Part shown: in pieces, positions 404-43,982 of the stretch
Layout of the letters: each line of letters opens with the position of its first letter
Numbering within the stretch: position 1 is the stretch's first letter
From: Scyliorhinus canicula
Lineage: Eukaryota
Direction: 5' to 3'
NCBI RefSeq assembly: GCF_902713615.1
Contig: NC_052165.1
Location: 19,906,522 to 19,970,521, forward strand
DNA length: 64,000 nt
The notes under the pieces: model-generated
Databases searched by the model: none
What the model was told of the DNA's origin: nothing
The model's input: the letters and a program-made list of their open reading frames with translations, nothing else
Translations under genes and position numbers: made by a program

Positions 404-590
404 TTGGGAGAGGGTGGAAAGTGGAGTCAATGTGGAAGATAATGTTGAATGGCAAAGAGGGCTCTGTCTACTCCTGCTCCTATTATGTTCTTAATACAGC
501 ATAAAATAGTAAAGACTTTAATTTCTCAATGAATAAAATAATTTTAAGAAGTAGCATTTGTGCTCAATATCTAAGGTTGTGAAAAATTAC

Positions 591-756
591 CTGGAAAAGG
601 TTCAAAATCCTCCAATTGTAATAAGTCAGTCAGAGAAGAAATAGAAGATTTTTCTGTACCGCTTAATGAGGCTTGAAGATCAGCAAAGAAGGATAGAGGT
701 GCTCTTGTTTGTTGCCTAGGCTTCCCTTGTGCCGGTGATTGAACCTCTGGAGTCCA
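591..756 (-). CDS. Coding exon 4 of an uncharacterised CH-domain gene (WTPEVQSPAQGKP...EDFEPFP); gene continues beyond the left window edge
   Basis: Acceptor ttttcgattcag|TGG, donor CCAG|gtaatt; 166 nt; phase 0 in, matching the previous exon; open frame. Confidence 0.75.
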
Positions 757-1192
757 CTGAATCGAAAACATAACACAATTTCCTTACCTTGGATCCGAAT
801 TCCACAATTATCACAGAAAACAGTGGCACAATTACAAGGAATATGTGTCACTGTCAGTCTTCAATAATTGTTTCAATTTTGTATTCGTATCATGTTTTTT
901 TAATATCAATGGTATCAAAATTATGGCTTTAATGTGTATTCTGTCAGCAATGATATTTTAATAAATATGCTAAGTTTGATTTAAAAGGATCATAGCAAGT
1001 TTTTATTTCTGATGAAATGGACAGAAATATTGCAACATTACATTCAAAAGCAATTATTTAGTGTCTATCAAAATTCCAAACATCATTATCCCAAATTAGA
1101 ATTTAAAATGAATAGATTATATCTATTCCAGACCAACGACATGTTGAATGAGCAATTGTGAACATCTAGAGAACATGAAGTCACCCTTGTAC

Positions 1193-1303
1193 CTTGAAGC
1201 AAACAGAACAGACCAGTTTGTTCTGGTCAAGCTGCAGTTGGCTTGATCTTTCCCAGGTGAATCGGATGTCATACACTATTAGTCGCCATAGCAGTTCCGC
1301 TAT
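1193..1303 (-). CDS. Coding exon 3 of the CH-domain gene (IAELLWRLIVYDIRFTWERSSQLQLDQNKLVCSVCFK)
   Basis: Acceptor gtgctttag|ATA, donor AAG|gtacaa; 111 nt, phase 0/0; LLWRLI resembles the terminal helix of a CH domain. Confidence 0.8.
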
Positions 1304-2389
1304 CTAAAGCACAAATCAAAATGCATTCCTCACAATATGGTCAACATTATGCAATCTAAGCATTAATCGCCAAGAATCAGTAAATAACACTGTTATCAGC
1401 TGATCCACTTAAGAAAAATAGGCACATAAATACATGAACCTGGACTTTACAATTGTAATGGCAGCAAAATTGTCAGCATACACTATCATAATCCTGGAAA
1501 CTGACAATAAAGTCTGTTGTCCCCATGTGTGCCGTTAAATGCTAAAATTGAGAAATTGCTGTGATGAATCTTTGGACATCCATACCTAACATATTTGGAA
1601 ATCACTGAACTGATGCAAAATTACCTTTCAAAGCTGCTAAAATATGAAAAGATTCCACATTGCTGCTGAGGTGAAACTGGGTTTTTTAATAGCATACTAA
1701 GACATGCCTACTGCTGAACAATCTGTCTGGCCCTGGGAAATTAGCCTTATATATGTGTAATGTACCAATCTTTATTTTGCTTTTTGTACAATTTATAAAA
1801 TGTGAAAGATCATAAGTGCATTTTACTTCCGGGTTTGCTGTCCGTGAGAATACTTAAATTTGATTGGCTTTTTACTTTGCTTGATGATCAAACAGGTCTC
1901 TTCGACTTGGTGCCAGATTCATTGGGAAAGATGGAATCCATCCAACAGAAATTGCTCGATGTTTATTGGCAACTTTCTTTGAGGTCAGTCCTGAACACCA
2001 TTGATTAGTCGTTGAGTGCAGAATCTGGGCTCATAAATAATTTTAATAGATTGCCATCAATAAAGAACTAATATTGAATTATATTTTCTGTAATGCAACA
2101 TTGAAGGTACAATTCATCATCATCGGAAGAATTTTTGGAGGACAATGGTAGTGGTAACAGCAGCAGATGGCTATGCAATTCATATCGGCCAACGTGTCAG
2201 TTTGTCGGTCCCAGCACGCCCACAAAGCCATTTTCAAGAATTCCAGGTACATTATTCAATTAATTAAAAAGTAATTTAAGGCGATTTATCAGAGGCCTCC
2301 TGTAGGCCATCCAGCATAGAGAGTCCACCTGCCGTCCTTAATTGGCAATGAGCAAGCATTCTGGTCACTAGTTGGCCAATCCACAATTG

Positions 2390-2982
2390 ATATCATAGAA
2401 TATCATAGAATTTACAGTGCAGAAGGAGGCCACTCGGCCCATCGAGTCTGCACCGGCTCTTGGAAAGAGCACCCTACCCGAGGTCAACACCTCCACCCTA
2501 TCCCCATAACCCAGTAATCCTACCCGACACTAAGGGCAATTTATCATGGTCAATCCACCTAACCTGCACATCTTTGGACTGTGGGAGGAAACCGGAGCAC
2601 CCTGAGGATACCCACGCACGCTCGGGGAGGATGTGCAGACTCCGCACAGACAGTGACCCAAGCCGGAATCGAACCTGGGAACCTGGATCTGTGAAGCAAT
2701 TGTGCTAACCGCCATGCTACCGTGCTGCCCCACAATGCTACCGTGCTGTCCCACAATCTTACCGTGCTGCCCCAAAATGCTACCGTGCTGTCCCACAATG
2801 CTACCGTGCTGCCCCACAATCTTACCGTGCAGCCCCACAATGCTACCGTGCTGCCCCACAATGCTACCGTGTTGCCCCACAATCTTACCGTGTTGCCCCA
2901 CAATGCTACCGTGCTGCCCCACAATGCTACCGTGCTGCCCCACAATCTTACCGTGCTGCCCCACAATGCTACCGTGCTGCCC
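2390..2982 (-). mobile_element. HE1-type tRNA SINE with a tandemly amplified 5' head
   Basis: CR1-like (TCTATGATA) tail; typical body; about 13 copies of a 21-bp unit at ~2712-2982. Confidence 0.9.
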
Positions 2983-3084
2983 CTACCAGATATGGAGTAG
3001 CTGGTCCCGACACAGTGCTTTTGATCCTGGCAAAAAGATTACTTTTTAACTTTACATGATATCAGACATCTTTGTATCTGTTGT

Positions 3085-3405
3085 TCAGTTGGCATAACTC
3101 TTGCCTGAGTCAGAAGGTCGTGGATTCACAGTCCCACTTCACGCATTGATCACAAAGGTCAAGGATGACACTCTGTACAGCACTCAATATTGTCAGAGTT
3201 CCTGTCTTCTGGAAGAGACGGTAAACTGAGGCCCAGCTGCCCTCAAGAGATGGACATAAAAAAAACTTTTGCCACAAAATAAAAAGTAGGGGAGTTATAA
3301 ATGATGTCCTGGCCAATATCTATCCCTCAATCAAGACAACAGAAAACGGATCTGGTCATTACCATATTGGTGTTTTTGGGAGTTTGGTGTGTGCAAATGG
3401 TTGGC
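3085..3405 (+). mobile_element. Old SacSINE1/DeuSINE-like SINE
   Basis: Recognisable GAGTCAGAAGGT...GGGGAGTT...GTCCTGGCCAATAT...GTGTGCAAAT body; family name from recall. Confidence 0.55.
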
Positions 3406-4440
3406 ACATTCCTATCACTTTGCTGATGGAAGGGATTGTTGGTAGTACTATCAAGTGGCACTTACTCAACAATACCAGCTCACTGATGTGTAGTTTGGGT
3501 TCCGCTAGGGCCACTCGGCGCCTGAACATCTTTACAATCTTGGTAAAACACGGACACAAGGACTAAAGTCAAGAGATGAGGTGAGAGGTACTGTCCATGA
3601 CATTGAAGCAACATTTGACCATGTGTGGCATTGAGGAGCCCTCGCAAAACGGATATCAATGGGAATCAGGGGAAAACTCTCCAGAGGTTGGAAAAGAAAA
3701 GTGGCTGAAGTTGTTGGAGGTCAATCATCTCAGTCCCAAGACATCACTGCAGGAGTTCCTCAGGGTAATGTCTTTAGCTCAACCATCTTTAGCTGCTTCA
3801 TTTTTGACCACTCCTCCATCACAAGGTCAGAAGTGGGGATGTTTACGGATGATTACATAATGTTCATGCAGCAGATGCATTGGAATGGCACCACCTGCAA
3901 GATCTCTTCCAAGCCACGCACCATCCTGACTTGGAACTATATCGCCATTCTTCTACTGTCACTGGGTCAAAATCTTGGAACTCCCTCACTAACAGCACTG
4001 TGGATGTGCCTACACTACATGGACAGCAGCAGTTCAATAAGGCAGCTCACTACAACCTTCTCAAGAGCAATTAGAGATGGGAATTAAAATTATGGTGAAG
4101 CAGATGATATCCAAGTCCTGTGACTCCTCAGATACTGAAACAGCCTAAGCCCATGCACAGCAAGCCCTGGACATCATTCAGGTTTGGCTGAAAAAGTGGC
4201 AAGTAACATTTGAGCCACCCAAGTGCCAGGCAATTACCATCTCTAACAAGAAATCTCCAATATTTTCCCCTTGCCATTCAATGCCTTGGAATTGCTAAAT
4301 GCCCCACTATCAACATCCTGGGGGTAACTCCCCTCCCAAACAGCAATGTGGTTGGAACTACACCACATGGACTGCAGCAATTTAAGGAGATGACTCTCAG
4401 CGACAATTAGGGACGGGCAATAAATGCCTGCCTAGCCAAC
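3405..4440. mobile_element. Cluster of decayed CR1-type LINE fragments
   Basis: ITAGVPQG.V and MFTDD remnants; repeated 3'-end pieces (AATTAGGGA.GGGCAATAAATGC). Confidence 0.6.
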
Positions 4441-4499
4441 AAAATAAGAACTGAGGAACAGGAGGGGAGTTATCCCCTGGACCAGGGTGTCCTGGTCAA

Positions 4500-4645
4500 T
4501 TCATGAAGCCCCGCCTTCTCAACGGTGCCCCTTGCCTGAGGTGTGTTGATCCTCAGGTTAAATCACCACCAGTCAGCTCTACCTCTGAAAGGGGAAAGCA
4601 GCCTATGGTCATCTGGGTCTATGGCTACTTTGCCTTTACCTTTCC
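4500..4645 (+). repeat. Short dispersed retro-repeat with a (TTTACC)-like tail; second copy at 53781-53923
   Basis: Two clearly homologous ~145-bp copies in the window. Confidence 0.7.
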
Positions 4646-5699
4646 TCTGACCAGTATTTATCCATCAGTCGACATAACAAAAAATAGGTTATGTGTTTGT
4701 TATATTGCTGTTTGTGGCAGTTTAGCACTTGGTTCCAAGTTCAATCCTGGAAATGAATAAAAGTTCTTGAACCTACAATTCATATTTCCCTATTTTAGAT
4801 GGCTTAGAAGAGGGAATCGACTATTAAAAGAACACAAAGATATTGCGGGTATGCCAAAAAAAGGGTTAATGAAAAAGGCTGCACTCTTTGGCAGATAGAA
4901 GACAGTTCCCACAAATGTACCTTACAAATGGAACACTGTTTGAAGGGAGAAAGTCAATTATGAAGCACAGTGGGTGAGAGGAACTTGTCGCTTCAAGTTA
5001 CTCGTGGAAGTTCACTTGATTTGTGCCAAATGGACAACATTCAAATATAAAACTACCTTAGGGATTGTAATTGAAGAAACATATTCCCTCCAGTTGAACT
5101 GATTAACTGCATAAATTGCAAATACTTAAAATAAATAACACTACCTCTGGTTCATTTCAAATATCTATTTGGTTGACATACACACAATCATTCTCAGCAT
5201 CTTTATCTTGTATTTGTAATGATCTGCGATTCCAATTCTGGACGCTTTTCAATCTTATCAACCTATTTAGAATATTTTTTGTAAGCATAGAATTCCTACA
5301 GCACGGAATGAGGTATTCGGTCCATCCTATTCCTGCAACCCCACCTAACCACATTTATGGACAATGGGACAAAACCGGAGCACACGGAGGAAACCCACAC
5401 AGACACAGGGAGAATGTGCAGTCAGCCAAGGCTGGAATCAAATCCGGGTCCCTGGTGCTGCGAGGCAGCATTGCTAACCACTATGCCATCCCGCTACATT
5501 CACTGCTCATGAAATTAAACATTTTCTCTTTAAAATATAACAGATTGAGTGAGAGATGGAAGCCACTGCTAACCAATTCCATTCAGAAGGGAAAATGTGG
5601 ATTTAAAGTATCAGATCTTATTGAGGGGAACAGGATGAAAGTTTACAATATTTCATAATTGTCCTAGCTGCCGAGCACAAGGTAATGAATGTGCAAATA

Positions 5700-6022
5700 A
5701 TCATAGATCATAGAATTTACAGTGCTGAAGGAGGCCATTCGGCCCGTCGAGTCTGCACCGACCCTTGGAAAGAGCACCCTACCCAGGCCCACACCTCCAC
5801 CCTATCCCCGTAACCCCACTTAACCTTTTTGGACACCAAGGGCAATTTAGCATAGCCAATCCACCTAACCTGCACATCGTTGGACTGTGGGAGGAAACCA
5901 GAGCACCCAGAGTAAACGCACACAGACGTAGAGAGAAAGTGCAAACACCGCACAGTCACCCAATGTTGGAATTGAACCCAGGCCCCTGGAGTGTGAAGCA
6001 GCAATGTTAACTACTGTGCCAA
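5700..6022 (-). mobile_element. HE1-type SINE
   Basis: Same body and tail as the 15788 copy. Confidence 0.85.
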
Positions 6023-6506
6023 TGTTGTCAGAAATCAAAGTGAACAGGGGGTGGAGACAACATTCACTTTCCACTAACTTATAAAACTCATTCATTCTGG
6101 GCTGCATTCTTTGCTTGCACCCGCCGAAAGATTGCCATGGTCGCGACGAGTACCATGTAAAGGTTCATTGACCTCAGGCAGGAATTTCTGGTCGCCGGAC
6201 AGACACGGCCGCAGAATCCCGCCCTCCGTGTGCCATGTAAGTTCACCATCTGTGGGCATTGTAACATTTTAAGGTATAGCATTTTCTAATGATGATACTG
6301 TGGTTTCTGCCCACTGACAAGGGTGAGACCTGCTGTGAGTGTGTTGATAAGTTGCCCAGCTCAGTTCAAGAGTCAATGATGAACAGTTTATGAGTCAGTC
6401 AGTTTCAATCCGAAGAGAATTATCCTAGGAGAATGGACAAGGGAGGGGCAACTGTGCAATTGAAACTGAGGAGGAGGCCCAGGAGTTGTTTGGTAGTTCC
6501 ATGTTG

Positions 6507-7626
6507 TGTTACGACACGCTGGAAAAGTGCACAATCAATTCCAGGCCCACAGGCCCCAGAATCCCAACACAAGTGAATTAACCAATAATTTGCATTAAAT
6601 GACCGAGATCTTTGGCCCTTGACTGCTCCAATGACTTACAGGCACCAGATTTGTAAACACAACAACTGTTTATTTATAACAGAAATAGAGTTGAAACATG
6701 TAGCAATTGTAACAAACCAACAGCCAGCTAATCTACTATTCCCCCCTTTCTACCCTCCAACCCTCTGTGCAATCACATACAAGACAGACACACACAGAGG
6801 GAGGGGTAGGGGTAAAATAACAACAAAAATTAAATGAAACATGAGTGTCCTTGCTTCCAATGTCAAGTCCGTTGCAGTAGGCTGTCCTCTCTGAGTGCTG
6901 AGGGATTGAAGCCACCGGCTGAATTACTGATGAGTATCTTCTGGCAGTAACATTCAGTCAGAACTCCCAGGCTGTCGAGCTCCCTCTGGGGAGTCACTTT
7001 AACTTTTAGCAACCTGAGCCTTCACAAAGGATCCTCCTCGGTCTGTTTAATTCTTAATTGTTTCCAGCTCAACCAGAATGACCAACAGCCTTACTGAGAC
7101 AAGAACAGAGTTCCCCACACAATATCTTTAAAAAGGATTTTTTAACAACTGACCCTGCCTGCAGCTAGTGGCTGGACTCAATTTCCCTGCAGTTCAATCA
7201 GGCTGTAGGGAGAGAAAGGTATTTACTTTAGATTTTCAGTAAGAATCCATCAGATGAGAGAGAGAGACATCAGAGTTGTGACCCTCCAGCTTCTAATCAA
7301 AACAAAAGTAAAAGCAAACAGTCACACAGAGGAAGGAACATTCCAGAGAAAACCCCAAACAATTAGCATGGGCCTTTGATAAGGCCCAGCAATTTGAAAC
7401 AGTCCATTGACCGACAACAAAGACCATCATGATATATCAGCACTGATCTTCCTTGAACCTGCTGATCTGAAATATAATAAACAGCTTTTTGCAACCTGCC
7501 TTGTCTGAGGTCATAAGTCGATCCTCAGTTTACCTGCCCCTTGAATTAAAGATGAAGTTCATTTTAAAGGCATAGGTCCCATCGATTGTTCATGGACAGA
7601 AAGGGATTAACAGGAGGACATTTACC
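6507..7626 (-). mobile_element. Probable solo LTR (~1.1 kb)
   Basis: Starts TGTTACG, ends TTTACC; imperfect 4-bp flanks GTTG/ATTG; non-coding; AATAAA on the minus strand. Confidence 0.4.
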
Positions 7627-7710
7627 ATTGTGAAAATATGTAGGATTAGAAGAAACCCTGGGAGCCACTAACAGTGTGTGAACACTAGAAAGTGGATGCA
7701 GAAGGTCTGG

Positions 7711-8282
7711 TGCTGGATTCTCCAATTTTGTGTCTAGGTCCAGAGGAAGCGTCTGGTCTTACAACCAAAATGTCGGCGCCACCCCTGCACCGATGCTCCG
7801 CCCGGTGGGGGGCTTGCAGCCACACCATGTAAATCCCCCGGCTTTACCTGTAGATGCAGACGCAGAATGGCCGGGTCCGCGGCCTGCGACGGTCTACGAG
7901 GGCCACACTGTACAACACGCCGCCAGCCGCGTGCTGACCTGGCATGCAAAATAGTGCCTCCCCCCGTAACCCCCCTCGCCTGCCCCCCCCCCCCCCCCCC
8001 CAGCTGTGGCGGCGCTGGACACAGTCCGCAGACACCACGGAGGTTCACGAAGGTTGAGAGCACATGGGACCGAAGCCGTCGGGAGGTTGGCCCATCGGGG
8101 GCTGAGCATCGGAGGAGGGCCTCAGGTGACGTCCTGAGGCCATCCGACCGGCGTGCGGCGTATGGGTACGCCGGGGGTGGAGCATCCAAAAAAGGGCCCC
8201 ATCCCTGATTTTGGAGTAAAAACGTATTCTGCGGCCGATTCCAGGAGGAATTTCGGCATCGGCAATCACAGATTCCCGCCCA
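7711..8282. mobile_element. GC-rich Harbinger-type MITE
   Basis: Termini TGCTGGATTCTCC ... AGATTCCCGCCC resemble those of the other Harbinger elements here. Confidence 0.55.
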
Positions 8283-8619
8283 GGATCTCTTCAATAAGGA
8301 ACCTTGAAAAAAGCTTGATGAGGAACTGAGTTTAAGGAACGCCTGTATTTGCTCGAACATGTAAAACAACAGTGATTTTAGATTTCATCTGTATTGGGTG
8401 TCTCAGGGAGAGAACCGAACTGAATAAAGCTCAAAGGTTTGCCAGAAGAAAACTTGAAGTTGAGTTAACTCAGGCGAGTTATATCAAGCCAAGTTCCGCT
8501 CTGGGAACTGACTAGCCCAGTATTAACATCAGCTGGGTTACAACACTCAGATTAAGTTTATAAAATCCATTGGAGAAATGGGGCATTTTTAAAACATATC
8601 TTTGCATTAGGTTGGATCA

Positions 8620-8808
8620 TGAAACGAAATGAAATGAAAATCACTTATTGTCACGAGTAGGCTTCAATGACGTTACTGTGAAAAGCCCCTAGTCGCCACA
8701 TTCCGGCACCTGTTCGGGGAGGCTGGTACAGGAATTGAACCGTGCTGCTGGCCTGCCTTGGTCTGCTTTAAAAGCCAGCGATTTAGCCCAGTGTGCTAAA
8801 CCAGCCCC
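8620..8808 (-). mobile_element. Short tRNA SINE (GGGGCTGGTTTAGC head, GTGACAATAA tail); related copies at 21806-21990, 27024-27198 and 63020-63131
   Basis: Multiple homologous copies; this one sits inside a CR1 3' end. Confidence 0.8.
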
Positions 8809-9289
8809 TCGAGCCTGCTCGCCATTCAATAAGATCATGACTGACCTGACTGTAACCTCAACTCCACAATCCCACCTACCCCGATACCCTTTCACCCCTT
8901 CACCAATCAAGAATTTATCCAGTTGTGCCTTAAAAATGTTCAAAGGCTCTGCTTCCGCTGCCTTCTGAGGAACAGAGTTTAAGAGTCTCATGACCCTCGA
9001 GAGAAAGAATTTCTGCTCATCTTTGTCTTCAATGAATGCCCGCCAATTCTAGATTCTCGAATAAAAGGTCATCAATTCCCCTCACAATAAACGGTAACAT
9101 TCTATTCACGTTCCTATTTTATGCAACAAGGACAACTCGCATTCATTAATCAATAGAAATATTGATATGGTAAGATGCCCCTCGTCAGTTCACAGGACTG
9201 TGACCCTCGGCCACAAGAAGAGAAATTAGCATTTAAAAAGAGCCGGGAGGGAATTCCACAGCTTAGGGCCTAAATTTTATTTTTACTTA

Positions 9290-9622
9290 TTGGATGTGGC
9301 CGTTTAGTGGGCCACTATTTATTGCCCTTGAACTTGACTTGCTCGGCCATTTCAGAGGGCATTTAAGAGTCAGCCACATCGCTGTGGATCTGGAGTCACG
9401 TGTAGACCAGACCAGAAAAGGATGGCAGATTTCCTTCAAAAAAAGGGCATGAGTGAACCAGATGGGTTTTTATGACAATCAACGATGGTCATCATTAGAC
9501 TTTTAATTCCAGATTTTTATTGAATTAAAATTTCACCACCTGCTGTAGTGCGATTCAAACCCAGGGCCTTGGGTGCCTGGATCATTGGTCCAGTGACAAT
9601 ACCACTGGGCCACCATCTCCCC
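9290..9622 (-). mobile_element. Older tRNA-derived SINE
   Basis: Minus-strand head GGGAGATGGTGG...GGTTTGAATC; CR1-like GGGCAATAAA tail. Confidence 0.55.
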
Positions 9623-9727
9623 ATGACTGAAGGCCTAGCTACCAATGGTGGGGAAATGAAAATTGAGAATGTACAAAAGGCCAGAACTGGAAGAATGCAG
9701 AATTCCTGCAGGTAGTAGAACTGGACT

Positions 9728-10152
9728 AAGAACAAAGAACACAGAAAAGTACAGCACAGGAACAGGCCCTTCGGCCCTGCAAGCCTGTGCCGACCATGTT
9801 GCCCGCCTAAACTACAATCTTCTACACTTCCTGGGTCCGTATCCCTCTATTCCCATCCTATTCATGTATTTGTCAAGATGCCCCTTAAATGTCACTATCG
9901 TCCCTGCTTCCACCACCTCCTCCGGCAGCGAGTTCCAGGCACCCACTACTCTGTGTAAAAAACTTGTCTCGTACATCTACTCTAAACCTTGCCCCTCGCA
10001 CCTTAAACCTATGCCCCCTAGTAATGGACCCCTCTTCCCTGGGGATAAGCCTCTGACTATCCACTCTGTCTATGCCCCTCATAATTTTGTAGACCTCTAT
10101 CAGGCCTCAGCCTCCGTCATTCCAGTGAGAACAAACCGAGTTTATTCAACCT
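9728..10152 (-). mobile_element. CR1 3' fragment
   Basis: MRGIDRVDSQRLIPR...TRGHRFKV...FFTQ. Confidence 0.85.
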
Positions 10153-10904
10153 ATAGAGGTTACAATGATAGGTAGGCGGTGAGGCCATGGAGGCAGTTGA
10201 AAACAAATATGGGAATTTATATCTTAAAATTGGCGTGAAATAGTTTCCTGACGGGAATCTGACATCTTTTGAAATTCAAGAGTCTAATTTCTATGATTTC
10301 CCATTTGATAAATACTGCACTCAAAAGAGATTCACACCAAAGAAAAGCAGCATCTTAATAATAATAGGCTGCTCTTACACTGCTTCCAGGTGTTTTAATT
10401 TACAATCATGTATACAATTGGCCTCAAGCAATCTCTGGAAGGGAACACTTGGGGCATTTTCAGCAAAATTACCTTTTAAACTTCAAAATTTAATTTACTT
10501 CCATATTGTATGAGTGGCACTGATACTGCAAGAAGTGAAAAGCCAAGATAATGCTTTGTGATCATTTGAGATATTTATTTCTGAAACCGAATGGCAAAAT
10601 CATTAGTTATGCAGCAGATTCCAAATTTAAAGTTATAACAAATTGACGTGAAAGTCTGTCAGTTAATGCTCCCATAGGGAGGATCTCACAGCAAAAAGAG
10701 CTACAGTATTATAGACCCCAATTCCCTGATTGCTGGAGGCACAGGTTAGGCAATTACCCCCTCAGCATAAATTGCCTATTAAACATGATTTCAATTGAAA
10801 CACAATTACACGATGATGGGAATTATCAAAAGATCAATTATCAAGATATCAATGTGGTGTCGGCCAAGCAAGAGAGTTAAGCTGAAAGAGGCCCTGTTAC
10901 ATAC

Positions 10905-11074
10905 ACATTTAGTATTTTTCTTGGCAATGGCATCACAGTCAAATTCGCTGTCCTCTGGTATGATGCCAGCGGCCCGCAATTCGACTAAAAGCAACTCAAA
11001 TTGTGCAATGCGTTGTCGGTATGTGTGGCAGCGGGTCATGTTGTGTATACTCTTTGGACACTTTCCGATTAAAC
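10905..11074 (-). CDS. Coding exon 2 of the CH-domain gene (LIGKCPKSIHNMTRCHTYRQRIAQFELLLVELRAAGIIPEDSEFDCDAIAKKNTKC)
   Basis: Acceptor tttcattag|GT, donor TGT|gtatgt; 170 nt, phase 1 to 0, compatible with both neighbours. Confidence 0.8.
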
Positions 11075-11651
11075 CTAATGAAAAGATGGAGAGAGAGGGG
11101 AGAAAAATCAATAAATCCCAACCTGTATCTAGCAGAAAAAGCAGTTCACTTGGAAATCAAGAATTAAAAGTTTCCATTGGTTAAAGAGAAAGAAATCCAC
11201 AGATCTTGTTGCTTAAATGTGTAAAGCCAATTTATAGAGCACAGAAAACAACAGCTATGTAACAATTCAAGAATATTTTAATAGTGTACAGACATAAATC
11301 TTGTTATCTATTCCTTCATTTCAGATATTCCAATTTTGGGAATTGGCAACACTTCTGCCTCTCCACAGGTTTCTATCAGTCAAACTGCCACCTGCCTTTC
11401 CAATTTACTTATCATAAAAGGCTACATGAAGGTGTGAACTACAGACTAGACATTATATTAGTCATGCAGCAAAATAAAATAGATTTTGGTAGAGTTTTGT
11501 TTAACTGCTTTGCACAACAAAATACAAGTTTTACTTAAAACTTTCCATGCAAATATTTGGCCAATGAAATACATAAACGTATACCAAAACAAATGACCAA
11601 TAGTTAAATTCGACAGAGAATTTTTTTAATAATCAAGCTATTTGAACCTAC

Positions 11652-11781
11652 CTTTTAACAAGGATTTCAAATGAGTGCCTACGAATATATCTGAAAATAC
11701 ATTATTGAGCGGCCTTTCAAATGATGAACATCGCACATTTGCCCAGGCCGTGTAGCTTGTTATTTTTGACTGTAGAGGCAT
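11652..11781 (-). CDS. First coding exon of the CH-domain gene (MPLQSKITSYTAWANVRCSSFERPLNNVFSDIFVGTHLKSLLK)
   Basis: ATG directly preceded by an in-frame TAA; donor AAAG|gtaggt (phase 1); upstream acceptor (T)n-aaattgcag at ~11828 implies a non-coding exon further upstream; YTAWAN resembles the FTxWxN CH-domain start. Confidence 0.8.
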
Positions 11782-12549
11782 TTAATCAGATATTTTCCAA
11801 ATCATTACACTGAAATGCATTCAATATCTGCAATTTAAAAAAAAAAATCAACTTCATAAACATTAACATAGGAACTTATGAAATCAGAGGAGAAGTAAAT
11901 CATACAGCTGCCCCAGCCTCTTTGCCATTCAATAAGATCATGGCTGATTTGTTTATGTTTCGAATTTCACATTCCCATCTACCCCAAGAATCTTTGATTC
12001 ACTTGCCGGACAAGAATCTATCTACCTCCACCGTAAACATATTTAATGACCTCACTTCCACCGCCTCCTTTGGCAAAGAATTTCAAAGTCTCTCTCTGAG
12101 AGAGAACAATTCACGCCACCTCTGCCTTGAAAGGGCAGCCCCTAAATTTAAACCAATGCCACCCCCCACCCCCTCCCTCCTGGCCTAGTTCTGGACTCAC
12201 TCACAAGAGGAAACATCCTTTCCACGTCAAGACTGTTCAGGATCGTGGGCGCCATTATCCCATCGTGTTGTGCCTGGCGCCGATCCCATCACGGCAGAGG
12301 CCAAAAAAGGGATTTGTACCCGGTGCCAAATGTTAAGTGATGGGTTAAGAGACATTCCAATTAGTTGCCTCATTTATGTTAAGTATCCAATAATTGACAC
12401 TGATTATGTAAAGGGGCTTCAGGTGACCTTTATGTGTGGTGATGTGAAGATAGAGTTTTGTGCAGAGTCTATTAAAGTGGAATAAAGGTGTCTGTAAAAG
12501 GAGCAGTACCTTTGACTCTTTATACAACAGCAGCTAAACGTATAACAAA

Positions 12550-19940: not shown

Positions 19941-19980
19941 GTGGCCTTCAGCTTGACACACCTTTCATCACAACTCACTT

Positions 19981-22900
19981 CCCCGATCACCCTGGTCCCC
20001 CTCCCGATCACCCTGTTCTCCCGATCATCCTGTTCCCCTCCCGATCACCCTGTTCCCTCTCCCGATCACCCTGTTCTCCCGATCACCCTGTTCCCCCTCC
20101 CTGATCACCCTGTTCCCCCTCCCCGATCACCCTGCTCCCCCTCCCGATCACCCTGTTCCCCCTCCCAGATCACCCTGCTCCCCCTCCCGATCACCCTGCT
20201 CCCCCCCGATCAACCTGTTCCCCCTCCCGATCAAACTGTTCCCCCTCCCCGATCACCCTGCTCCCCCTCCCCGATCACTCTGTTCCTCCTCCCAATCACC
20301 CTGTTCTCCCGATCATCCTGTTCCCCCTCCCGATCACCCTGTTCCCCCTCCCGATCACACTGTTCCCCTCCCCGATCACCCTGTTCCCCCTCCCCGATCA
20401 CCCTGTTCCACCCCGATCACCCTGTTCCCCCTCCCCGATCAGCCTGTTCCCCTCCCCGATCACCCCATTACCCCCCCCGATCACCGTTCCCCTCCCCGAT
20501 CACCCTGTTCCCCCTCCCGATCACCCTGTTCCCCCTCCCCCATCACCCTGTTCCCCCTCCCGATCACCCTGTTCCCACCCAATCACCTTGTTCCTCCTCC
20601 CGATCACCCTGTTCCATCTTCCCGATCACCCTGATCCCCCCCGATCTCCCTTTAACCCCCCCGATCACCCTGTTCCCCCTTCCCGATCACCCTGTTCCCC
20701 CTCCCGATCACCCTGTTCACCCTCCCGATCACCCTGTTCCCCCTCCCGATCACACTGTTCCCCCTCCCGATCACTCTGTTCCCCCTTCCCGATCACCCTG
20801 TTTGTGCTCCCGATCCCCCTGTTCCCCTTCCCGATCACCCTGTTCCCCCCCCCCCGATCACCCTGTTCTTCCTCCCGGTCACCCTGTCCCCCCCCCCCCC
20901 CCCCCAATCACCCTGTTCCCTCCCCGATCACCCTGTTCCTGCTCCCGATCACCCTGTTCCCCCTTCCCGATCACCCTGTTCCGCCCCCCCGCCCCCGATC
21001 ACCCTGATCCTCCTCCCGATCACCCTGTTCCCCCTTCCCGATCACCCTGTTCCTCCTCCCGATCACCCTGTTCCCCCTTCCCGATCACCCTGTTCCTGCT
21101 CCCGGTCACCCTGTTCCCCCTTCCCGATCACCCTGTTCCCCCTCCCGATCACCCTGTTCCCCCCCCCGATCACCCTGTTCCCCCTTCCCGCTCACCCTGT
21201 TTATGATCCCGATCACCTTGTTCCCTCTTCCCGATCACCCTGTTCCCCCCCCGGTCACCCTGTTCTTCCTCCCGGTCACCCTGTTCCTCCCCCCGATCAC
21301 CCTGTTCCCCCCCCGATCACCCTGTTCCTGCTCCGGATCACCCTGTTCCCCCTTCCCGATCACCATGTTTCCCCCCCCCCCCCCCCCGATCACCCTGTTC
21401 CTCCTCCCGATCACCCTGTTCCATCTTCCCGATCACTCTGTTCCTGCTCCCGATCACCCTGTTCCCCCTTCCCGATCACCCTGTTCCTCCTCCCGATCAC
21501 CCTGTTCCCCCTTCCTGATCACCCTGTTCCTGCCCCCGGTCACCCTGTTCCCCCTTCCCGATCACCATGTTCCCCCCCCCCCCGATCACCCTGTCCATCC
21601 CCCCGATCACCCTGTTCCCCCTCCCCGATCACCCTGTTCCCCCTCCCTGATCACCCTGTTCCCCCCGATCACCCCGTTCCCCCTCCGCGATCACCCTGTT
21701 CCCCCTCCCGATCATCCTGTTCCCCCACCCCGATCACCCTGTTTCCCCTCCCCGATCACCCTGTTCCCCCTCCCCGATCACCCTGTTCCCCCTCCCGATC
21801 ACTCTGAAAATGAAAAAATGAAAATCGCTTATTGTCACGAGTAGGCTTCAATGAAGTTACTGTGAAAAGCCCCTAGTCGCCACATTCCGGCGCCTGTCCG
21901 GGGAGGCTGGTACGGGAATCGAACCGTGCGGCTGGCCTGCTTGGTCTGCTTTAAAAGCCAGCGATTAGCCTTGTGAGATAAACCAGCCCCTCTGTTGCCC
22001 CTCCCCGATCACCCTGTACCCCCTCCTGATCACCCTGTTCCCCCTCCCCGATCAGACGATGTGGAGTCTGTGTGGGTAGAGTTGAGGAACCACAAAGGCA
22101 AAAAAACCATAATGGGAGTTATGTACAGGCCTCCTGACAGTGGTCAGGACCAGGGGCACAAAATGCACCACGAAATAGAAAGGGCATGTCAGAAAGGCAA
22201 GGTCACAGTGATCATGGGGGACTTCAATATGCAGGTGGACTGGGTAAATAATGTTGCCAGTGGACCCAAAGAAAGGGAATCCATTGAATGTTTACAGGAT
22301 GGCTTTAGTGTTATGTAATGAGCCAGAATTGATAAAAGATCTTAAAGTAAGGGAACACTTAGGAAGCAGTGATCATAATATGGTAGAATTCAGTCTGCAA
22401 TTTGAAAGAAGGAAGGTAGAATCAGATGTAAAGGTTTTATAGTTAAATAAAGGTAATTACAGGCGCATGAGGGAGGAACTGACGAAAATCGACTGGAAGC
22501 AGAGCCTAGTGGGAAAGACAGTAGAACAGCAATGGCAGGAGTTTCTGGGAGTAATTGAGGACACAGTGCAGATGTTCATCCCAAAGAAAAGAAAGGTTAT
22601 CAGAGGGAGGATTAGGCAGCCATGGCTGACAAAGGAAGTCAGGGAATGCATCAAGGCAAAAGAGAGAGCCTATAATGTGGCAAAGAGTAGTGGGAAGTCA
22701 GAAGATTGGGAAGGCTACAAAAACAAACAGAGGATAACAAAGAGAGAAATAAGGAAGGAGAGGATCAAATATGAAGGTAGGCTAGCCAGTAACATTAGGA
22801 ATGATAGTAAAAGTTTCTTTAAATACATTAAAAACAAACGGGAGGCAAAAGTAGACATTGGGCCGCTCCAAAATGACGCTGGTAATCTAGTGATGGGAGA

Positions 22901-25900
22901 CAAGGAAATAGCTGAGGAACTTAATAAGTACTTTGCGTCAGTCTTCACAGTAGAAGACATGAGTAATATCCCAACAATTCAGGAAAGTCAGGGGGCAGAG
23001 TTGAATATGGTTGCCATCACAAAGGAGAAGGTGCTAGAGAAACTAAAAGGTCTGAAAATTGATAAATCTCCGGGCCCAGATGGGCTACATCCTAGAGTTC
23101 TAAAGGAGATAGCTGAAGAAATAGTGGAGGCGTTAGTTATGATCTTTCAAAAGTCACTGGAATCAGGGAAAGTCCCAGAGGATTGGAAAATCGCTGTTGT
23201 AACCCCCCTGTTCAAGAAGGGAACAAGAAAAAAGATGGAAAATTATAGGCCAATTAGCCTAACCTCGGTTGTTGGCAAAATTCTAGAATCCATCGTTAAG
23301 GATGAGATTTCTAAATTCTTGGAAGTGCAGGGTCGGATTAGGACAAGTCAGCATGGATTTAGTAAGGGGAGGTCGTGCCTGACAAACCTGTTAGAGTTCT
23401 TTGAAGAGATAACAAATAGGTTAGACCAAGGAGAGCCAATGGATGTTATCTATCTTGACTTCCAAAAGGCCTTTGACAAGGTGCCTCACGGGAGACTGCT
23501 GAGTAAAATAAGGGCCCATGGTATTCGAGGCAAGGTACTAACATGGATTGACGATTGGCTGTCAGACAGAAGGCAGAGAGTTGGGATAAAAGGTTCTTTT
23601 TCGGAATGGCAACCGGTGACAAGTGGTGTCCCGCAGGGTTCAGTGTTGGGGCCACAGCTGTTCTCTTTATATATTAACGATCTAGATGACGGGACTGGGG
23701 GCATTCTGGCCAAGTTTGCCGATGATACAAAGATAGGTGGAGGGGCAGGTAGTATTGAGGAGGTGGGGAGGCTGCAGAAAGATTTAGACAGTTTAGGAGA
23801 ATGGTCCAAGAAGTGGCTGATGAAATTCAACGTGGGCAAGTGCGAGGTCTTGCACTTTGGAAAAAAGAATAGAGGCATGGACTATTTTCTAAACGGTGAC
23901 AAAATTCATAATGCTAAAGTGCAAAGGGACTTGGGAGTCCTAGTCCAGGATTCTCTAAAGGTAAACTTGCAGGTTGAGTCCGTAATTAAGAAAGCAAATG
24001 TAATGTTGTCATTTATCTCAAGAGGCTTGGAATATAAAAGCAGGGATGTACTTCTGAGGCTTTATAAAGCATTAGTTAGGCCCCATTTAGAATACTGTGA
24101 GCAATTTTGGGCCCCACACCTCAGGAAGGACATACTGGCACTGGAGCGGGTCCAGCGGAGATTCACACGGATGATCCCAGGAATGGTAGGCCTAACATAC
24201 GATGAACGTCTGAGGATCGTGGGATTATATTCATTGGAGTTTAGGAGGTTGAGGGGAGATCTAATAGAAACGTACAAGATAATGAATGGCTTGGATAGGA
24301 TGGACGTAGGGAAGTTGTTTCCATTAGCAGGGGAGACTAGGACGCGGGGGCACAGCCTTAGAATAAAAGGGAGTCACTTTAGAACAGAGATGAGGAGAAA
24401 TTTCTTCAGCCAGAGAGTGGTAGGTCTGTGGAATTCATTGCCACAGAGGGCGGTGGAGGCCGGGACATTGAGTGTCTTTAAGACAGAAATTGATAAATTC
24501 TTGATTTCTCGAGGAATTAAGGGCTATGGGGAGAGAGCGGGTAAATGGAGTTGAAATCAACCATGATTGAATGGTGGAGTGGACTCGATGGGCCGAATGG
24601 CCTTACTTCCACTCCTATGTCTTATGGTCTTATGGTCTTATGATCACCCTGTTCCCCCTCCCGATCACCCTGTTCCCCTCCCCGATCACCCTGTTCCCTC
24701 CCCAATCACCATGTTCCCCCTCTCCGATCACCCTGTTCCCCCTCCCCGATCACCTTGTTCCCCCTCCCGATCACCCTGTTCCCCCTCCCCGATCACCCTG
24801 TTCCCCCTCACGATCACCCAGTTCCCTTCCCCGATCACCGTTCCCCCCTCCCGATCACCCTGTTCCCCCTCCCGATCACCCTGTTCCCCCTTCCCGATCA
24901 CCCTGTTCCCCCTCACGATCACCCTGTTCCCTTCCCCGATCACCGTTCCCCCTCCCGATCACCCTGTTCCCCCTCCCGATCACCCTGTTCCCCCTCCCCA
25001 ATCACCCTGATCCCCCTCCCGATCACCCTGTTCCCCCCCCGATCACCCTGTTCCTGCTCCCGATCACCCTGTTCCCCCTTCCCGATCACCATGTTTCCCC
25101 CCCCCAATCACCCTGTTCCTCCTCCCGATCACCCTGTTCCATCTTCCTGATCACCCTGTTCCTGCTCCTGATCACCCTGTTCCCCCTTCCCGATCACCCT
25201 GTTCCTCCTCCCGATCACCCTGTTCCCCCTTCCCGATCACCCTGTTCCTGCCCCCGGTCACCCTGTTCCCCCTTCCCGATCACCCTGTTCCTCCTCCCGA
25301 TCACCCTGTTCCCCCTTCCGGATCACCCTGTTCCTGCCCCCGGTCACCCTGTTCCCCCTTCCCGATCACCCTGTTTCCCCCCCCCCGATCACCCTGTCCC
25401 CCCCCCGATCATCCTGTTCCCCCTCCCCGATCACCCTGTTCCCCCTCACGATCATCCTGTTCCCCCACCCCGATCACCCTGTTTCCCCTCCCGATCACCC
25501 TGTTCCCCCTCCCGATCACCCTGCTCCCCCTCCTGATCACCCTGTTCCCCCTCCCCGATCACCCTGTTCCCCCTCCCCGATCACCCTGTTCCCCTCCCCG
25601 ATCACCTGTTCCCCCTCCCCGATCACCCTGTTCCCCCTCCCGATCATCCTTTTCCCCCTCCCCGATCACACTGTTCCCCCTCCCGATCATCCTGTTCCCC
25701 CTCCCCGATCACCCTGTTCCCCCTCCCCGATCACCCTGTTCCCCCCCCCGATCACCCTGTTCCCCCTCCCCCTGATCACCCTTTCCCCCTCCCGATCACC
25801 CTGTTTCCCCCTCCCGATCACCCTGTTCCCCCTCCCGATCATCTTGCTCCCCCTCCCCGATCACCCTGTTCCCCCTCCCGATCACCCGGTTCCCCGTCCC

Positions 25901-29914: not shown

Positions 29915-31159
29915 TGCTATGGTGTCCTTGAATGGTGGAACATGGCCCTAAATGGTCTATGCCAGTTTCTTTGACGTTGAAACAATGGTTTCAACAACAA
30001 TGAAACAAACGTGGTTGACTTGTAATTTTGAGCCAATTTCAAGTTACAAAGTTGATAGAATATCACACAGCCAAAGGAGTAAAGGATGATAGATAAGTCA
30101 GAGAAAGCAATGATCTGAATATTTTATACCTGGGCTGAACCTTCCCACACTGTGTCTATTTCAGGACATCAACAAATAAGATGGACATTTGAGTGCTACA
30201 GGCACTAAGTGGATGTGAGTGTTGAACAAAGACTATATATACTTTGCATGGTGGAAAGGGGGAGTCATAGAGTTGATTTCATAAAGCATAGAAAAAGTTA
30301 ACCCCACAACATTGAATTACACTGCAATATACTTCTGGAATATACATTCAAACTAGTGGAAGGTAACTTCTGAAACAATATCATGGAATTTTCCTTCAAA
30401 GAGATAGAACAGTGGAGGAAAATACTCTGAAAACACCTGCATGATACAAATTAGGCGTGTTGGCTGGGAGAGGGGGTGGGTGGCGGTGGGGGCTAGCATC
30501 CTCTGGATGGCTGAATTAAGATGGGCCGAATAACTATACTCGCCTGTGCTTATCTCATGAAAAAGTTACTTGCCAGCTCTAGGTTAGGTTTAAGGTGGAA
30601 GGGTAAGGTAAGCTGCTCGCTGGTCCATGCCTTCAGCCTCTTACCTCGCAACTGAGAATGGTCCACCCCTATGTTCCCTCCATCTTGCATCATGAAAGTC
30701 CTTCATCATCGCATTAACCTGGAACGGCCAATTGAGGGAAGTTAGCGGTCAGGTCGCACCCTGATGGTCACAATGGGAATTTGCTGCCTTTCGCGGTTGG
30801 ATTCTCCACCTTTATAGAAAAGACAACATTCAGAAGCTCCCAGCAACCGCGGGACCTGGTCTTGCGATTGGTGCATCGTCTCAATGAAGCGTCAGAGAGA
30901 AAGGTGTTGTTTGCCGTTACTATGACTCCCAAATAATCCGCTCTGAAACTCGCCTATTTAACCGCCATCCTTTGTTCCACTCAACTACTGAGCTGGGTCT
31001 CAGTATCTCCCAAGCATCAGGCGTGCTGTAACACCCCGTTTGTTAAATTACCCGCACATTCCTGCTCCCTTGTTGTTCCCAGAACGTTTAAGTGAAGGAA
31101 AGAAAAAAACATCTGCAGTGAGTGTTCTGACAGCTGGGCGACAGTCTGGGGAGTAAGTT

Positions 31160-34646: not shown

Positions 34647-34994
34647 TTCATAGAATTTACAGTGCAGAAGGAGGCCATTCGGCCCATCGAGTCTGCATCG
34701 GCTCCTGGAAAGAGCACCCTACCCAAGGTTAACACCTCCACCCTATCCCCATAACCCAGTAACCCCACCCAACACTAAGGGCAATTTTGGACACTAAGGG
34801 CAATTTATCATGGCCAATCCACCTAACCTGCACATCTTTGGACTGTGGGAGGAAACCGGAGCACCCGGAGGAAACCCACGCACACACGGGGAGGATGTGC
34901 AGACTCCGCACAGACAGTGACCCAAGCCGGAATCAAACCTGGGACCCTGGAGCTGTGAAGCGATTGTGCTAACCACAATGCTACCGTGCTGCCC
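34647..34994 (-). mobile_element. Young HE1-type SINE inserted just after the Gypsy gag start
   Basis: Near-identical to the 15788 copy; splits MELR...CLRISPQ. Confidence 0.92.
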
Positions 34995-35933
34995 AACTGC
35001 CTCCGCATCAGCCCGCAAACTACGAACGCATCGGCAATCTTCAAGCATTGGCTGCCGTGTTTCGATAGCTATCTGGCGACCGCAAGCAGCCCCCCCACCT
35101 TGGCACAGAAACTTCATATTCTCCATTCCAGCGAGGGCATGGCAGCCTACGTGATGATAGAGGAAGAAAAGGAATATGACGTGGCCATGGATATGCTAAA
35201 AGGACAATTTCTTAAGCCGGTAAACCGAGTGTACGCCCGACATCTGATGGCTACCAGACAACAGCTCCCCGGTGAGTCCTTAGATGATTTTTACCGGGCC
35301 CTCGCTGTCCTGGGGAGGAATTGCGCCTGCCTCCAAGTTTCAGCCACTGAGCACATGGAACTTTTAATCAGAGATGCTTACGTGGCTGGGATGCAGTCCG
35401 CCGCAATCCGCCAGCGGCTGCTGGAAAAAGACGACCTCAGCCTAACTGAGGCACGGACTCTCTCCACCTCCCTGGAGGTCGCTGACTTAAATGCCCGCGC
35501 CTATGCCCCCAGCCGCGCTGCAACGCCCTGGGCCTCCTGGCACGCTTCCCCACCGCCATCCGCCGCTCTCGACCCCCCTCAGTCCTGCGCCGCGGGACGC
35601 CCCGACAAGTCCATGGGGCCCCGCTGCTATTTCTGTGGGCTTGCCAAACACCCCCGCCCGTGCTGCCCAGCCCGCTCCCCCCTTTGTAAGAGCTGCGGGA
35701 AGAAGGGCCATTTTTAGACGGTCTGCCAGGCCAAATCGGTTGCTGCTGTGCCGCGCAGCGACCGGGGATCTCCTCCTCCGGGCCCTTCCAGGTCCTTCCA
35801 GTCCACCGCATCAATCTCCCCCCCCCCCCCCGGCCCCCGGGCCCCTGCGTCCGGCCTGCGCGCCTCTTTGCCCCCGCTCTCAACCGCTCCGAGGGCCCGC
35901 TGGCACCGCTAACCCCGCCCCCAGCAACCACGA

Positions 35934-36085
35934 GGGTCCTGCGGGCGCCGCCATCTTGGGCCCCGGACACCAGGTGCGGGTCCTGGGCTCCGCCATCTTG
36001 GGGCCCCAACTCCACGTGCGGGTCCTGGGTGCCGCCATCTTGGGGCGCCGACCCCACGTGCGGGTCCTGGGCGCCGCCATCCTGG
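35934..36085 (+). repeat. 42-bp tandem repeat (4 units) between gag and protease of the Gypsy
   Basis: CGCCATC recurs at 35949, 35991, 36033 and 36075. Confidence 0.9.
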
Positions 36086-42330: not shown

Positions 42331-42501
42331 TTATTTTATACTCTGATTATCTTGTATTTTCTTAAGCAGGTATTCCATCTGTATGTTCAGGTTCGGTTGC
42401 CCCTTTCTTGTTTTTTTGCTGAGAATTCTGTACTTTTCCAGTTTAAGCTCCTTGTATTTCCTCTGGGCCTCTTCCTTTTCTTGTCGACTTTTTTCAGCTG
42501 C
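42331..42501 (-). CDS. CCDC59: CCDC59 (TAP26) last coding exon ([56 protein letters not shown])
   Basis: Acceptor (t)n-aataaag|GCA; ends in TAA; KKT.KGQPNLN.QMEYLL.KIQ is the conserved CCDC59 C-terminus. Confidence 0.95.
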
Positions 42502-43497
42502 CTTTATTAAAAAAAAATATTTAGAAAGTTAAGTACACTTTGAATGAATAACTCTGGAACATTATTGGTTCAGTGGGGTTAAGAGATTTATGACAATCCT
42601 TTGAATGTATTCTCTGATTCAACACATTCACATTTTGGCACCGCATGTCGTACATGGTTATAATTCACAGAGAGTGCGCTTAAATAGCAGCTTACTGATG
42701 GGCACATTTTCGGCGAATTCCAAATTGTAACTGACAGACGGCACACATCGCTGACAATATGCATTGGTGGTGAAGGTACTGAATGTTTAAGATGGTGGAA
42801 GGAGGTTCAAGTGAATCTATGATCACTCTGTTGCAGAAAAACTGATATCTACTGGATATCTTTTTGGCAGTGTTATCATAGGTCTATGAACTTTCAGTTG
42901 CAGGTAAGTTGGCACAGATCAGAGTTATGTGGCAGATGTGCTTTGTGTGTCTGATAGCTATTGGCAGCAGGGCAATAATGGGAATTGTATTTTGGAGAAC
43001 TTCTTCAGGTTCAGCCTCAGCAGGTATGTCATTTTCTCAGTGTGGGTTAATTTCAATTTTGCCTTAACCCACATGTACTCAGTGAGATGGGGTGGGATGT
43101 GATGGGCTGTAAGAAGGAGGGGCTTGAGTTTTCTGCCTCATATCTTCCTCCAGGGTCTTAATGAGAGCTTCACACTTAGACTTGCCTTGCTTTTGCAAGC
43201 GAGCCGCCAGAAGATGCCGCACCTTGCAACAGAGAACCACCAGAAGCTGCTCTCTTTGGGATAGATACATTAGTAAGGCTCCAGGGGACAATCCCTGCCA
43301 CCTACTAATTAACTTCATCAGGAATCAGGAAACACCTTATAGAAGAAGATTAGGAGTACAAACAAGTCAGTTAGTTGAGAAGAAGTTTGGAATTGATACT
43401 GAGAAACAGTTGCAGATGTGGGCAACATGGTCGGAAATGTAGCAAATAATGGAGAGAGTAATAGCTGGGTAGAGGAGGACAGAGACACACTAAAAGT

Positions 43498-43782
43498 GGG
43501 CTGCACAGTGGCTAGCACTGCTGCCTCACAACGCCAGGACATGGGTTCGATTCCGATCTTGAGTGAATGTGTGTAGTTTCACATTCTCCCCGTTTTTTGC
43601 ATAGGTTTCCTCCGGGTGCTCTTGTTTCCTCCCGCAGTCCAAAGATGTAAAGGTTAGGTGGATTTGTGATTCTAAATTGCCCCTTAGTGTCCAAACGTTG
43701 GATGGGCCTAGGGGGATCGAGGGGGTATTGGGCCTAGATGGGGTGCTCTTTTGGAGGGTCGGTGCAGATTTGATGGGCCGAT
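43498..43782 (+). mobile_element. HE1-type SINE, diverged
   Basis: tRNA-like head and shared body. Confidence 0.75.
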
Positions 43783-43982
43783 GAAAATGGGAAGATACAA
43801 AGCAGATGAAATGCGAATGCATTTTGAAAAGAATGAGGAGAAGCAACTTAAACAAACTGTTTTGAAGGGGGCGCAAGAACAGAGAGAACAGGGGGTTCAC
43901 AAACTCAATTCTTTTAAGGTTACAGGACAAATTGATAAGGCTGATCAAAACAAAAAGTGCAACTTTTTTCTAGCAGATATTT

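Follow-up and report, generated by a model that had tools for sequence, protein, structure and literature searches.

A catshark gene beside CCDC59 that begins with a predicted tandem calponin-homology module and continues into ankyrin repeats

A stretch of 64,000 nucleotides from the catshark Scyliorhinus canicula (contig NC_052165.1, positions 19,906,522 to 19,970,521; hereafter the window, in which all positions are counted) contains, on its minus strand between positions 11827 and 591, four exons that encode the N-terminus of a protein with a calponin-homology (CH) domain. These four exons are the real, spliced and transcribed start of the single-copy catshark gene LOC119955195, and the reality of this gene is effectively settled. 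Taken as a whole, the observations are very probably best explained by a transcribed, ancient gene that encodes a tandem-CH module and ankyrin repeats, was passed on by vertical descent beside CCDC59, would act as a linker between actin and partner proteins, and was lost in amniotes and teleosts. What is new here is the architecture and the family of tandem-CH proteins to which it belongs; the RefSeq gene model, which is unnamed, was already known.

The first coding exon, E1 (11827-11652), carries a 46-nucleotide leader after a CAG acceptor, an ATG at 11781 and a GTAGGT donor. Its coding part (11781-11652) comprises 130 nucleotides, that is, 43 codons and one additional base, and supplies residues 1-43, with helix A of the first CH domain, CH1 (the TAWANVR motif), and the DIF..THLKSLL segment. 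The middle of CH1, residues 44-100, is encoded by the 170 nucleotides of E2 (11074-10905; acceptor CATTAG, donor GTATGT). The last CH1 helix (LLWRLIV) and the DIxFTWERSSQLQL...CFK stretch come from E3 (1303-1193, 111 nucleotides, residues 101-137; CTTTAG and GTACAA), and E4 (756-591, 166 nucleotides, residues 138-192 plus one base; ATTCAG and GTAATT) provides the WTP motif, followed by a weakly conserved stretch, predicted to be disordered, between CH1 and the second CH domain, CH2. With the exon ends located on the sequence itself, all splice sites are GT-AG, the phases are 1, 0, 0 and 1, and the joined coding sequence of 577 nucleotides has 192 codons without a stop. An exon chain with such an open joined frame is well beyond chance expectation. 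Re-reading gave the same peptide as an earlier note on this DNA, made from the letters alone, which had proposed four minus-strand exons with canonical sites, these phases and a 192-codon frame, and the outer coordinate of that note, 11827, is the first base past the CAG acceptor. The window is free of any N; the gene extends past its start, and the remainder lies outside. In sharks, the length of the gene is well above 100 kb, with ranges of 165 kb in S. torazame and 127 kb in Chiloscyllium.

The joined residues are identical, at 192 of 192 positions, to residues 1-192 of XP_038637111.1, a RefSeq protein of 1057 amino acids from S. canicula that is labelled "uncharacterized protein LOC119955195". 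When the 56 residues of E2 were compared by phmmer with 1.84 billion representative proteins, one true match was obtained, a 1007-amino-acid protein of the sawshark Pristiophorus (E 1.1e-13), the N-terminus of which is colinear with all four exons across every junction. A second match, covering 25 residues of a repetitive 520-amino-acid protein, was rejected as spurious. Judging from this identity of sequence, the gene is already modelled in RefSeq with the same N-terminus, unnamed and unstudied, and hence is not new to the databases. Literature searches under the locus names, accession numbers or domain combinations brought up nothing relevant to the gene. The earlier note had recognized no named gene here, and as far as names are concerned that claim stands, every family member found being labelled uncharacterized or hypothetical, or misnamed from its ankyrin repeats; the existing RefSeq model is what it has to concede.

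Contigs of sequencing runs from three studies (X1, X2 and X8) cover exons only, with coverage that ends exactly at 10905 and 11829. All of them skip 11075-11651, which gives the E1-E2 joint 11074|11652, and the ends of the skipped piece read CT..AC on the plus strand, that is, GT..AG on the minus strand; all are unbroken over 11650-11829. Past 10905, the loose end of X8 equals window positions 1274-1303, the start of E3, in 30 of 30 letters. Past 11829, the loose ends comprise 120 letters in X1 and 191 letters in X8, and that of X1 equals 30647-30676, again in 30 of 30 letters. These transcripts contain the joints leader-E1, E1-E2 and E2-E3, and the E3-E4 joint is indicated by the RefSeq protein and the aligned orthologues. 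The three runs also contain exon-sized shares of window positions 500-1400. At 11807, just within a second TTTCAG acceptor, one X1 contig departs and runs on for 147 letters that are absent from the window; it may be chimeric, or these letters may come from an alternative leader exon that lies upstream and beyond the window. Two more X1 contigs (3104 and 383 nucleotides) coincide with E2 over its final 30 letters only and diverge after them, with a mixed loose-end consensus (agreement 0.63), and this divergence at 10905 may reflect an alternative downstream exon or a k-mer branching artefact.

In a window so rich in transposons, and with nothing above threshold when Pfam was applied to the four single exon peptides, a chance chain of open reading frames (ORFs), a pseudogene or a transposon fragment might be suspected in place of a gene. 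That suspicion has already been refuted by the spliced transcripts of the exons, by the identity to the RefSeq protein, and by orthologues that are 38-75% identical and have intron positions in common over more than 500 million years; it is left with a next to negligible probability.

The loose ends of X1 and X8 also delimit the 3' part of a 5' leader exon at 30693-30645 on the minus strand (donor GTAAGA), the real 5' end of which lies further upstream. An upstream ORF of 23 codons (MMQDGG...) begins with an ATG at 30693 and ends in the leader of E1 (30693-30646 plus 11827-11712), and is conserved at 14 of 16 positions with S. torazame. The older S. torazame model GCB71563.1 begins at this upstream ATG and joins the main frame via an invented 96-nucleotide intron inside E1, a start that replaces the conserved first 23 residues of CH1. 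All other orthologues begin with the conserved M-x-x-x-[ST]-[RK]-I...TAWAN. Because the contigs are continuous over 11650-11829 and the other orthologues have the conserved start, the N-terminus of GCB71563.1 is a modelling error and the start codon of the RefSeq catshark model is confirmed; both points are of value for annotation.

E1-E3 encode a type-1 CH domain, and E4 encodes the conserved WTP motif and a disordered insert; the part in the window is the 5' third of the tandem-CH region. A profile of 12 orthologous N-termini matches CH1 of utrophin (E 1.7e-8, over profile positions 7-110), as well as CH1 of dystrophin, plectin, filamin A/B, MACF1 and the alpha-actinins, the whole range being E 1.7e-8 to 1e-4. 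In these alignments FTAWANvR corresponds to FTKWINAR and the LLWkLIv helix to LGLLWSIIL, with the DLf.Gt.L..LLE.LtGk block as a third correspondence. It was with these very motifs that the earlier note had argued for a CH-like domain, and its argument is borne out both by the profile and by a fold model that matches tandem-CH domains. A search of ESM Atlas with E2 alone gave weak CH leads at 0.80, and CH clusters made up 87 of 100 language-model neighbours. The predicted fold is all-helical over about 105 residues, as in CH domains, and has the tryptophan in helix A and the LLW motif in the last long helix that typify such domains; W13 and W106 vary little or not at all across the family. The most conserved stretch of the family, DIxFTWERSSQLQL...CS.PFKWTP, spans the end of E3 and the start of E4, and the mean column identity among the 12 orthologues is 0.73 for E3 and 0.49 for E4. 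A match of E3 to DUF5530 (13.4 bits versus a gathering cut-off of 25, E 0.07, with a 37-residue query) was treated as a chance hit; DUF5530 is also absent from every full-length family member, and a literature search on it found nothing relevant.

Of 12 family members, 10 match PF00307 in CH2, which comprises approximately residues 205-320 and lies beyond the window; the gathering score of 26 is passed by the tunicate and lamprey proteins, with 30.7 and 28.8 bits, respectively. A CH1-type domain is thus followed by a CH2-type domain in one chain, the order that defines a tandem-CH domain. In an AlphaFold2 model of residues 1-335 (mean predicted local distance difference test score, pLDDT, 77; predicted template modelling score 0.78), the two domains are predicted to pack in a closed arrangement like that of the actin-binding domains of alpha-actinin, filamin, plectin and dystrophin. 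Foldseek aligned the predicted model to whole tandem-CH actin-binding domains with template modelling scores of 0.71-0.78, normalised by target. By VIA-align, the closest was alpha-actinin-3 (1wku; Z 19.6, root-mean-square deviation (rmsd) 2.7 A, 220 of 227 residues), and filamin B, plectin and dystrophin in its closed state scored no more than one Z unit away; the four range over Z 18-19.6, rmsd 2.5-3.1 A and 210-225 residues, versus a Z of approximately 13 for single CH domains and parvin. Taken separately, model residues 1-116 align to CH1 of alpha-actinin on F-actin (3lue; Z 13.2, 108 of 109 residues) and to CH1 of beta-spectrin (8iah), and the predicted CH2 aligns to CH2 of utrophin (Z 13.7) and of beta-spectrin (Z 12.7). 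The best structural matches in Swiss-Prot were calmin, interaptin, cortexillins, beta-spectrins and actinins. Residues 140-188 are poorly conserved and have a pLDDT below 50 in the model.

The portion of the protein that follows CH2 also lies beyond the window and consists of a long helical hairpin, a beta domain of about 120 residues and about 450 residues of ankyrin repeats. A model of residues 320-560 of XP_038637111.1 (pLDDT 82) contains three long helices and the beta domain at approximately 407-525, and the ankyrin repeats at approximately 535-990 match Pfam Ank_2 (E 2.1e-49) in five stretches. The beta domain had no Pfam match and nothing significant in the PDB by Foldseek. Clusters of AlphaFold DB (E 2.5e-8 to 3.6e-5, rmsd 2-3 A, about 120 residues) and of the ESM Atlas do contain a similar domain, N-terminal to VWA domains, and by this analogy the beta domain may be a VIT-like domain. 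A wide VIA search on the middle region was filled by helical-hairpin matches, and an ESM Atlas search by features gave no usable match. No characterised protein with the order tandem CH, helices, beta domain and ankyrin repeats was found, and no such model came up in Swiss-Prot.

Relatives were sought in 5.8 billion proteins by three word-indexed searches, with the shark N-terminus, the caecilian N-terminus and a 10-sequence full-length profile as queries. Such searches reach only proteins that share exact 5-residue words with the query and have 0.55-1.75 of its length, and the best 8000 candidates were scored in the profile search. Orthologues were found in the lampreys Petromyzon, Lampetra and Lethenteron (38-42% identity), sharks and one skate, the sturgeons Huso and Acipenser, the coelacanth Latimeria, the caecilians Rhinatrema and Geotrypetes, the frog Ascaphus and, with 39% identity across 99% of the length, the tunicate Phallusia. 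In addition, an intronless, mRNA-like contig of 3587 nucleotides from a JGI metatranscriptome encodes a family member of 1037 amino acids that groups with the tunicate in the tree; it stems from a marine invertebrate, probably a tunicate, in which the gene is expressed. The branching of 15 members in a maximum-likelihood tree agrees with that of the species, with 10 of 12 inner branches fully supported: cartilaginous fishes are monophyletic, the coelacanth lies with the amphibians, and the lampreys and the tunicate fall outside. Because the tree matches the species tree, it argues for single-copy vertical descent, and the gene predates the split between tunicates and vertebrates. The intron positions of the first exons are common to the skate, sturgeon and lamprey loci.

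These word-indexed searches, with the best 8000 candidates scored in the one by profile, gave no match among the proteins of mammals, birds, reptiles or teleosts, though they reached more distant members. As no orthologue appeared in their protein sets, the gene was most likely lost in amniotes and teleosts. A named mammalian orthologue, fast-evolving or differently modelled, might instead have been missed. The dependence of the searches on exact words, length and candidate number would allow for this, as would the fact that the absence from amniotes comes from protein-level searches alone, and split models do exist: PP6 ankyrin subunit A-like is the name carried by lamprey fragments of the family, and Ankycorbin that of a fragment from Acipenser. 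Set against this, the same searches reached the tunicate at 39% and the lampreys at 38-42% identity and yet no amniote or teleost; the phmmer search with E2, which uses no word index, gave the family's own representative as its one true match; and no Swiss-Prot model with a CH-CH-ankyrin architecture came up. Nor did the protein-search, phmmer and Swiss-Prot structure matches include any named protein of an amniote that shares this architecture at significant similarity. A missed mammalian orthologue is accordingly improbable, and loss is the preferred explanation. The earlier note had suggested that the gene may be ancient, kept in cartilaginous fish and lost in mammals. Its age held, and is greater than was proposed, since the tunicate and the lampreys have the gene and the gene tree equals the species tree. 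The distribution agrees with the rest of that proposal, except that retention is wider (sturgeons, coelacanth, caecilians and Ascaphus) and that the absence is one from protein searches.

The same note had placed the gene next to CCDC59, and the synteny comparison that it suggested confirms this neighbourhood in the catshark and finds it conserved in sturgeon and lamprey, where the immediate upstream neighbour, on the same strand, codes for a protein of about 240 amino acids with PF08524 (rRNA_processing, BR22/CCDC59). With CCDC59 immediately upstream and in the same orientation in shark, sturgeon and lamprey alike, the order CCDC59 and then the CH-ankyrin gene is at least as old as the vertebrate ancestor. 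In the skate, no neighbouring gene was found in the flanks of the locus.

In the spectrin/actinin superfamily, CH1 provides the main actin-binding surface, and closed packing of CH1 on CH2 is regulatory, as in actinin, filamin, utrophin and spectrin. By analogy, the N-terminal tandem-CH module would dock on F-actin via CH1, the long insert and the invariant FTWER-WTP stretch might tune the opening of CH1 and CH2 or bind a partner, and the ankyrin platform might recruit cargo, that is, one or more partner proteins, such that the protein as a whole would be a linker from actin to its partners. This pairing of F-actin binding through CH1 with one or more partner proteins on the ankyrin platform is, in our view, rather likely, with the odds somewhat on its side. 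The cytoskeleton binding suggested in the earlier note is, likewise, an inference from the predicted fold.

It is also possible, albeit distinctly less likely, that the tandem CH has the fold of an actin-binding domain without binding actin, and that it is a protein-protein adaptor (as parvin CH is with ILK and paxillin) or a microtubule or membrane module, the whole being a scaffold unrelated to F-actin. The identity of only 13-19% to actin-binding domains is compatible with such a role, as are the long family-specific insert and the invariant FTWER...WTP after CH1, which is missing from canonical domains. Parvin CH2 also aligns to the CH1 part (Z 13), and gamma-parvin and PAT-6 are among the Swiss-Prot matches. 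However, in sequence the first domain finds its best matches, without exception, in the CH1 domains of proteins proven to bind actin, the two-domain whole fits actinin, filamin and plectin (Z 18-19.6) far better than it fits a single CH domain or parvin (Z 13), and the order of a CH1-type and then a CH2-type domain is canonical. These points favor an actin-binding module.

The strongest form of the proposal would be an undescribed chordate family of tandem-CH proteins, the sole one to fuse an actinin-type domain directly to an ankyrin platform, which arose before the tunicate split, has lain beside CCDC59 since the vertebrate ancestor, was lost independently in amniotes and teleosts, and works in a specialised, actin-rich cell type. 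In this full form it is a long shot. As to the cell type, most of the keepers (lampreys, sharks and skates, sturgeons, coelacanth and caecilians) retain ancestral aquatic senses, e.g., ampullary electroreceptors, an idea that is pure speculation from the list of taxa; the frog Ascaphus and the tunicates do not fit this pattern and speak against such a link.

Several points weigh against the overall reading of a transcribed, ancient tandem-CH and ankyrin gene lost in amniotes and teleosts. For transcription, the RNA label of the runs that carry the joints, X1, X2 and X8, is a guess; exon-only coverage with GT-AG skips is hard to obtain from DNA. From a raw oligo-dT RNA run, a single read aligned in part to the stretch, and it fell on a repeat near 12.2 kb, away from all exons. 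Because this run gave only that single, off-exon read, expression of the gene is restricted or low, that is, not ubiquitous or not high. For the fold, Pfam finds CH1 in no single sequence, and finds no CH domain in the catshark protein at E 0.01. Only one of five AlphaFold2 models was confident (pLDDT 77 versus 42-58), the alignment behind it had 12 rows, and the sequence identity to solved actin-binding domains is the low one given above. Moreover, the connection between CH1 and CH2 comprises about 90 residues, 49 of them disordered, versus a short linker in canonical domains, and so departs from the short helical linker of the actinin type. For the loss in amniotes and teleosts, the searches that support it are word-indexed protein searches with 8000 best candidates, not genome searches.

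The upstream neighbour CCDC59, which is not part of the gene, occupies 42340-54967 on the same, minus strand and belongs to the Pfam rRNA_processing/BR22 family. A tblastx comparison of the window with the upstream genes of sturgeon and lamprey placed exons at 51610-51374, 45461-45378 and 42516-42340 (minus strand), and its first exon is as in the earlier note. Retroelement ORFs lie at 34986-37906, between the two genes, and at 48931-50751, inside CCDC59; they include a gag-like ORF with a zinc knuckle, pol fragments and a reverse transcriptase of 606 amino acids. The introns of CCDC59 and the intergenic space are largely transposon-derived. At 22467-24554, an ORF of 695 amino acids for a reverse transcriptase of the long interspersed nuclear element type is flanked on both sides by proline-rich repeat ORFs (PDHPVPPP and SRSPCSP units, GC content about 0.6, strong skew) at 19941-21844 and 24571-25536 on the plus strand, and the whole of 19941-25536 looks like a satellite array split by a retrotransposon. 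Inside the 9.6-kb intron between E2 and E3, a minisatellite of 21-nucleotide units (2530-3049) translates into GQHGSIV/GQHGKIV units in one frame and into MLPCCPT units from the opposite strand, with ORFs of 115-144 amino acids that are not genes.

Tandem-CH actin-binding proteins form a small, heavily studied set that consists of actinins, spectrins, dystrophin/utrophin, filamins, plakins, nesprins, calmin, fimbrins and parvins. The present gene would add a further ancient tandem-CH family with a new architecture, no member of which was found in the standard amniote and teleost models, and the family would have escaped study because human, mouse, chick and zebrafish have no member. It offers a clean case of the repeated loss of an old cytoskeletal gene, and the conserved anchor CCDC59 makes this loss directly testable in any genome. 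With the long insert that separates CH1 from CH2, the module further represents a naturally occurring variant of the actin-binding domain, and bears on how the opening and closing of two CH domains control actin binding.

Compared with the actin-binding domains of alpha-actinin, spectrin, dystrophin, filamin and plakins, the catshark module has the same succession of a CH1-type and a CH2-type domain and a predicted closed packing. It differs from them, at 13-19% identity, in its connection of about 90 residues with a disordered insert in place of a short linker, in the invariant FTWER...WTP after CH1, and in being followed by a beta domain and ankyrin repeats, whereas spectrin, filamin or plakin repeats follow in the known proteins; actin binding by the catshark module is suggested by analogy with them. 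Calmin (CLMN), interaptin and cortexillin likewise carry a tandem-CH domain at the very start of a protein of about 1000 residues. However, their identity is approximately 11-15%, they have a C-terminal transmembrane anchor or a coiled coil and no ankyrin repeats, and they are not orthologues. Ankycorbin (RAI14) and PP6 ankyrin subunit A resemble the family in their ankyrin repeats, and their names were assigned automatically to truncated family fragments by repeat similarity. RAI14 has N-terminal ankyrin repeats and a coiled coil without CH domains, whereas full-length family members bear CH-CH at the N-terminus. The beta domain at approximately 407-525 matches the putative VIT-like domain that precedes VWA in VWA proteins; in the catshark protein, unlike in these, no VWA domain follows it. 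In the parvin-ILK-PINCH complex, CH domains and an ankyrin-repeat platform link actin to partners, and parvins are among the weaker structural matches of the catshark module. The likeness to this complex is one of functional analogy, with homology limited to the domain folds. There, the CH domains, which in parvin are atypical, and the ankyrin repeats reside on separate proteins, whereas the catshark protein has both in one chain.

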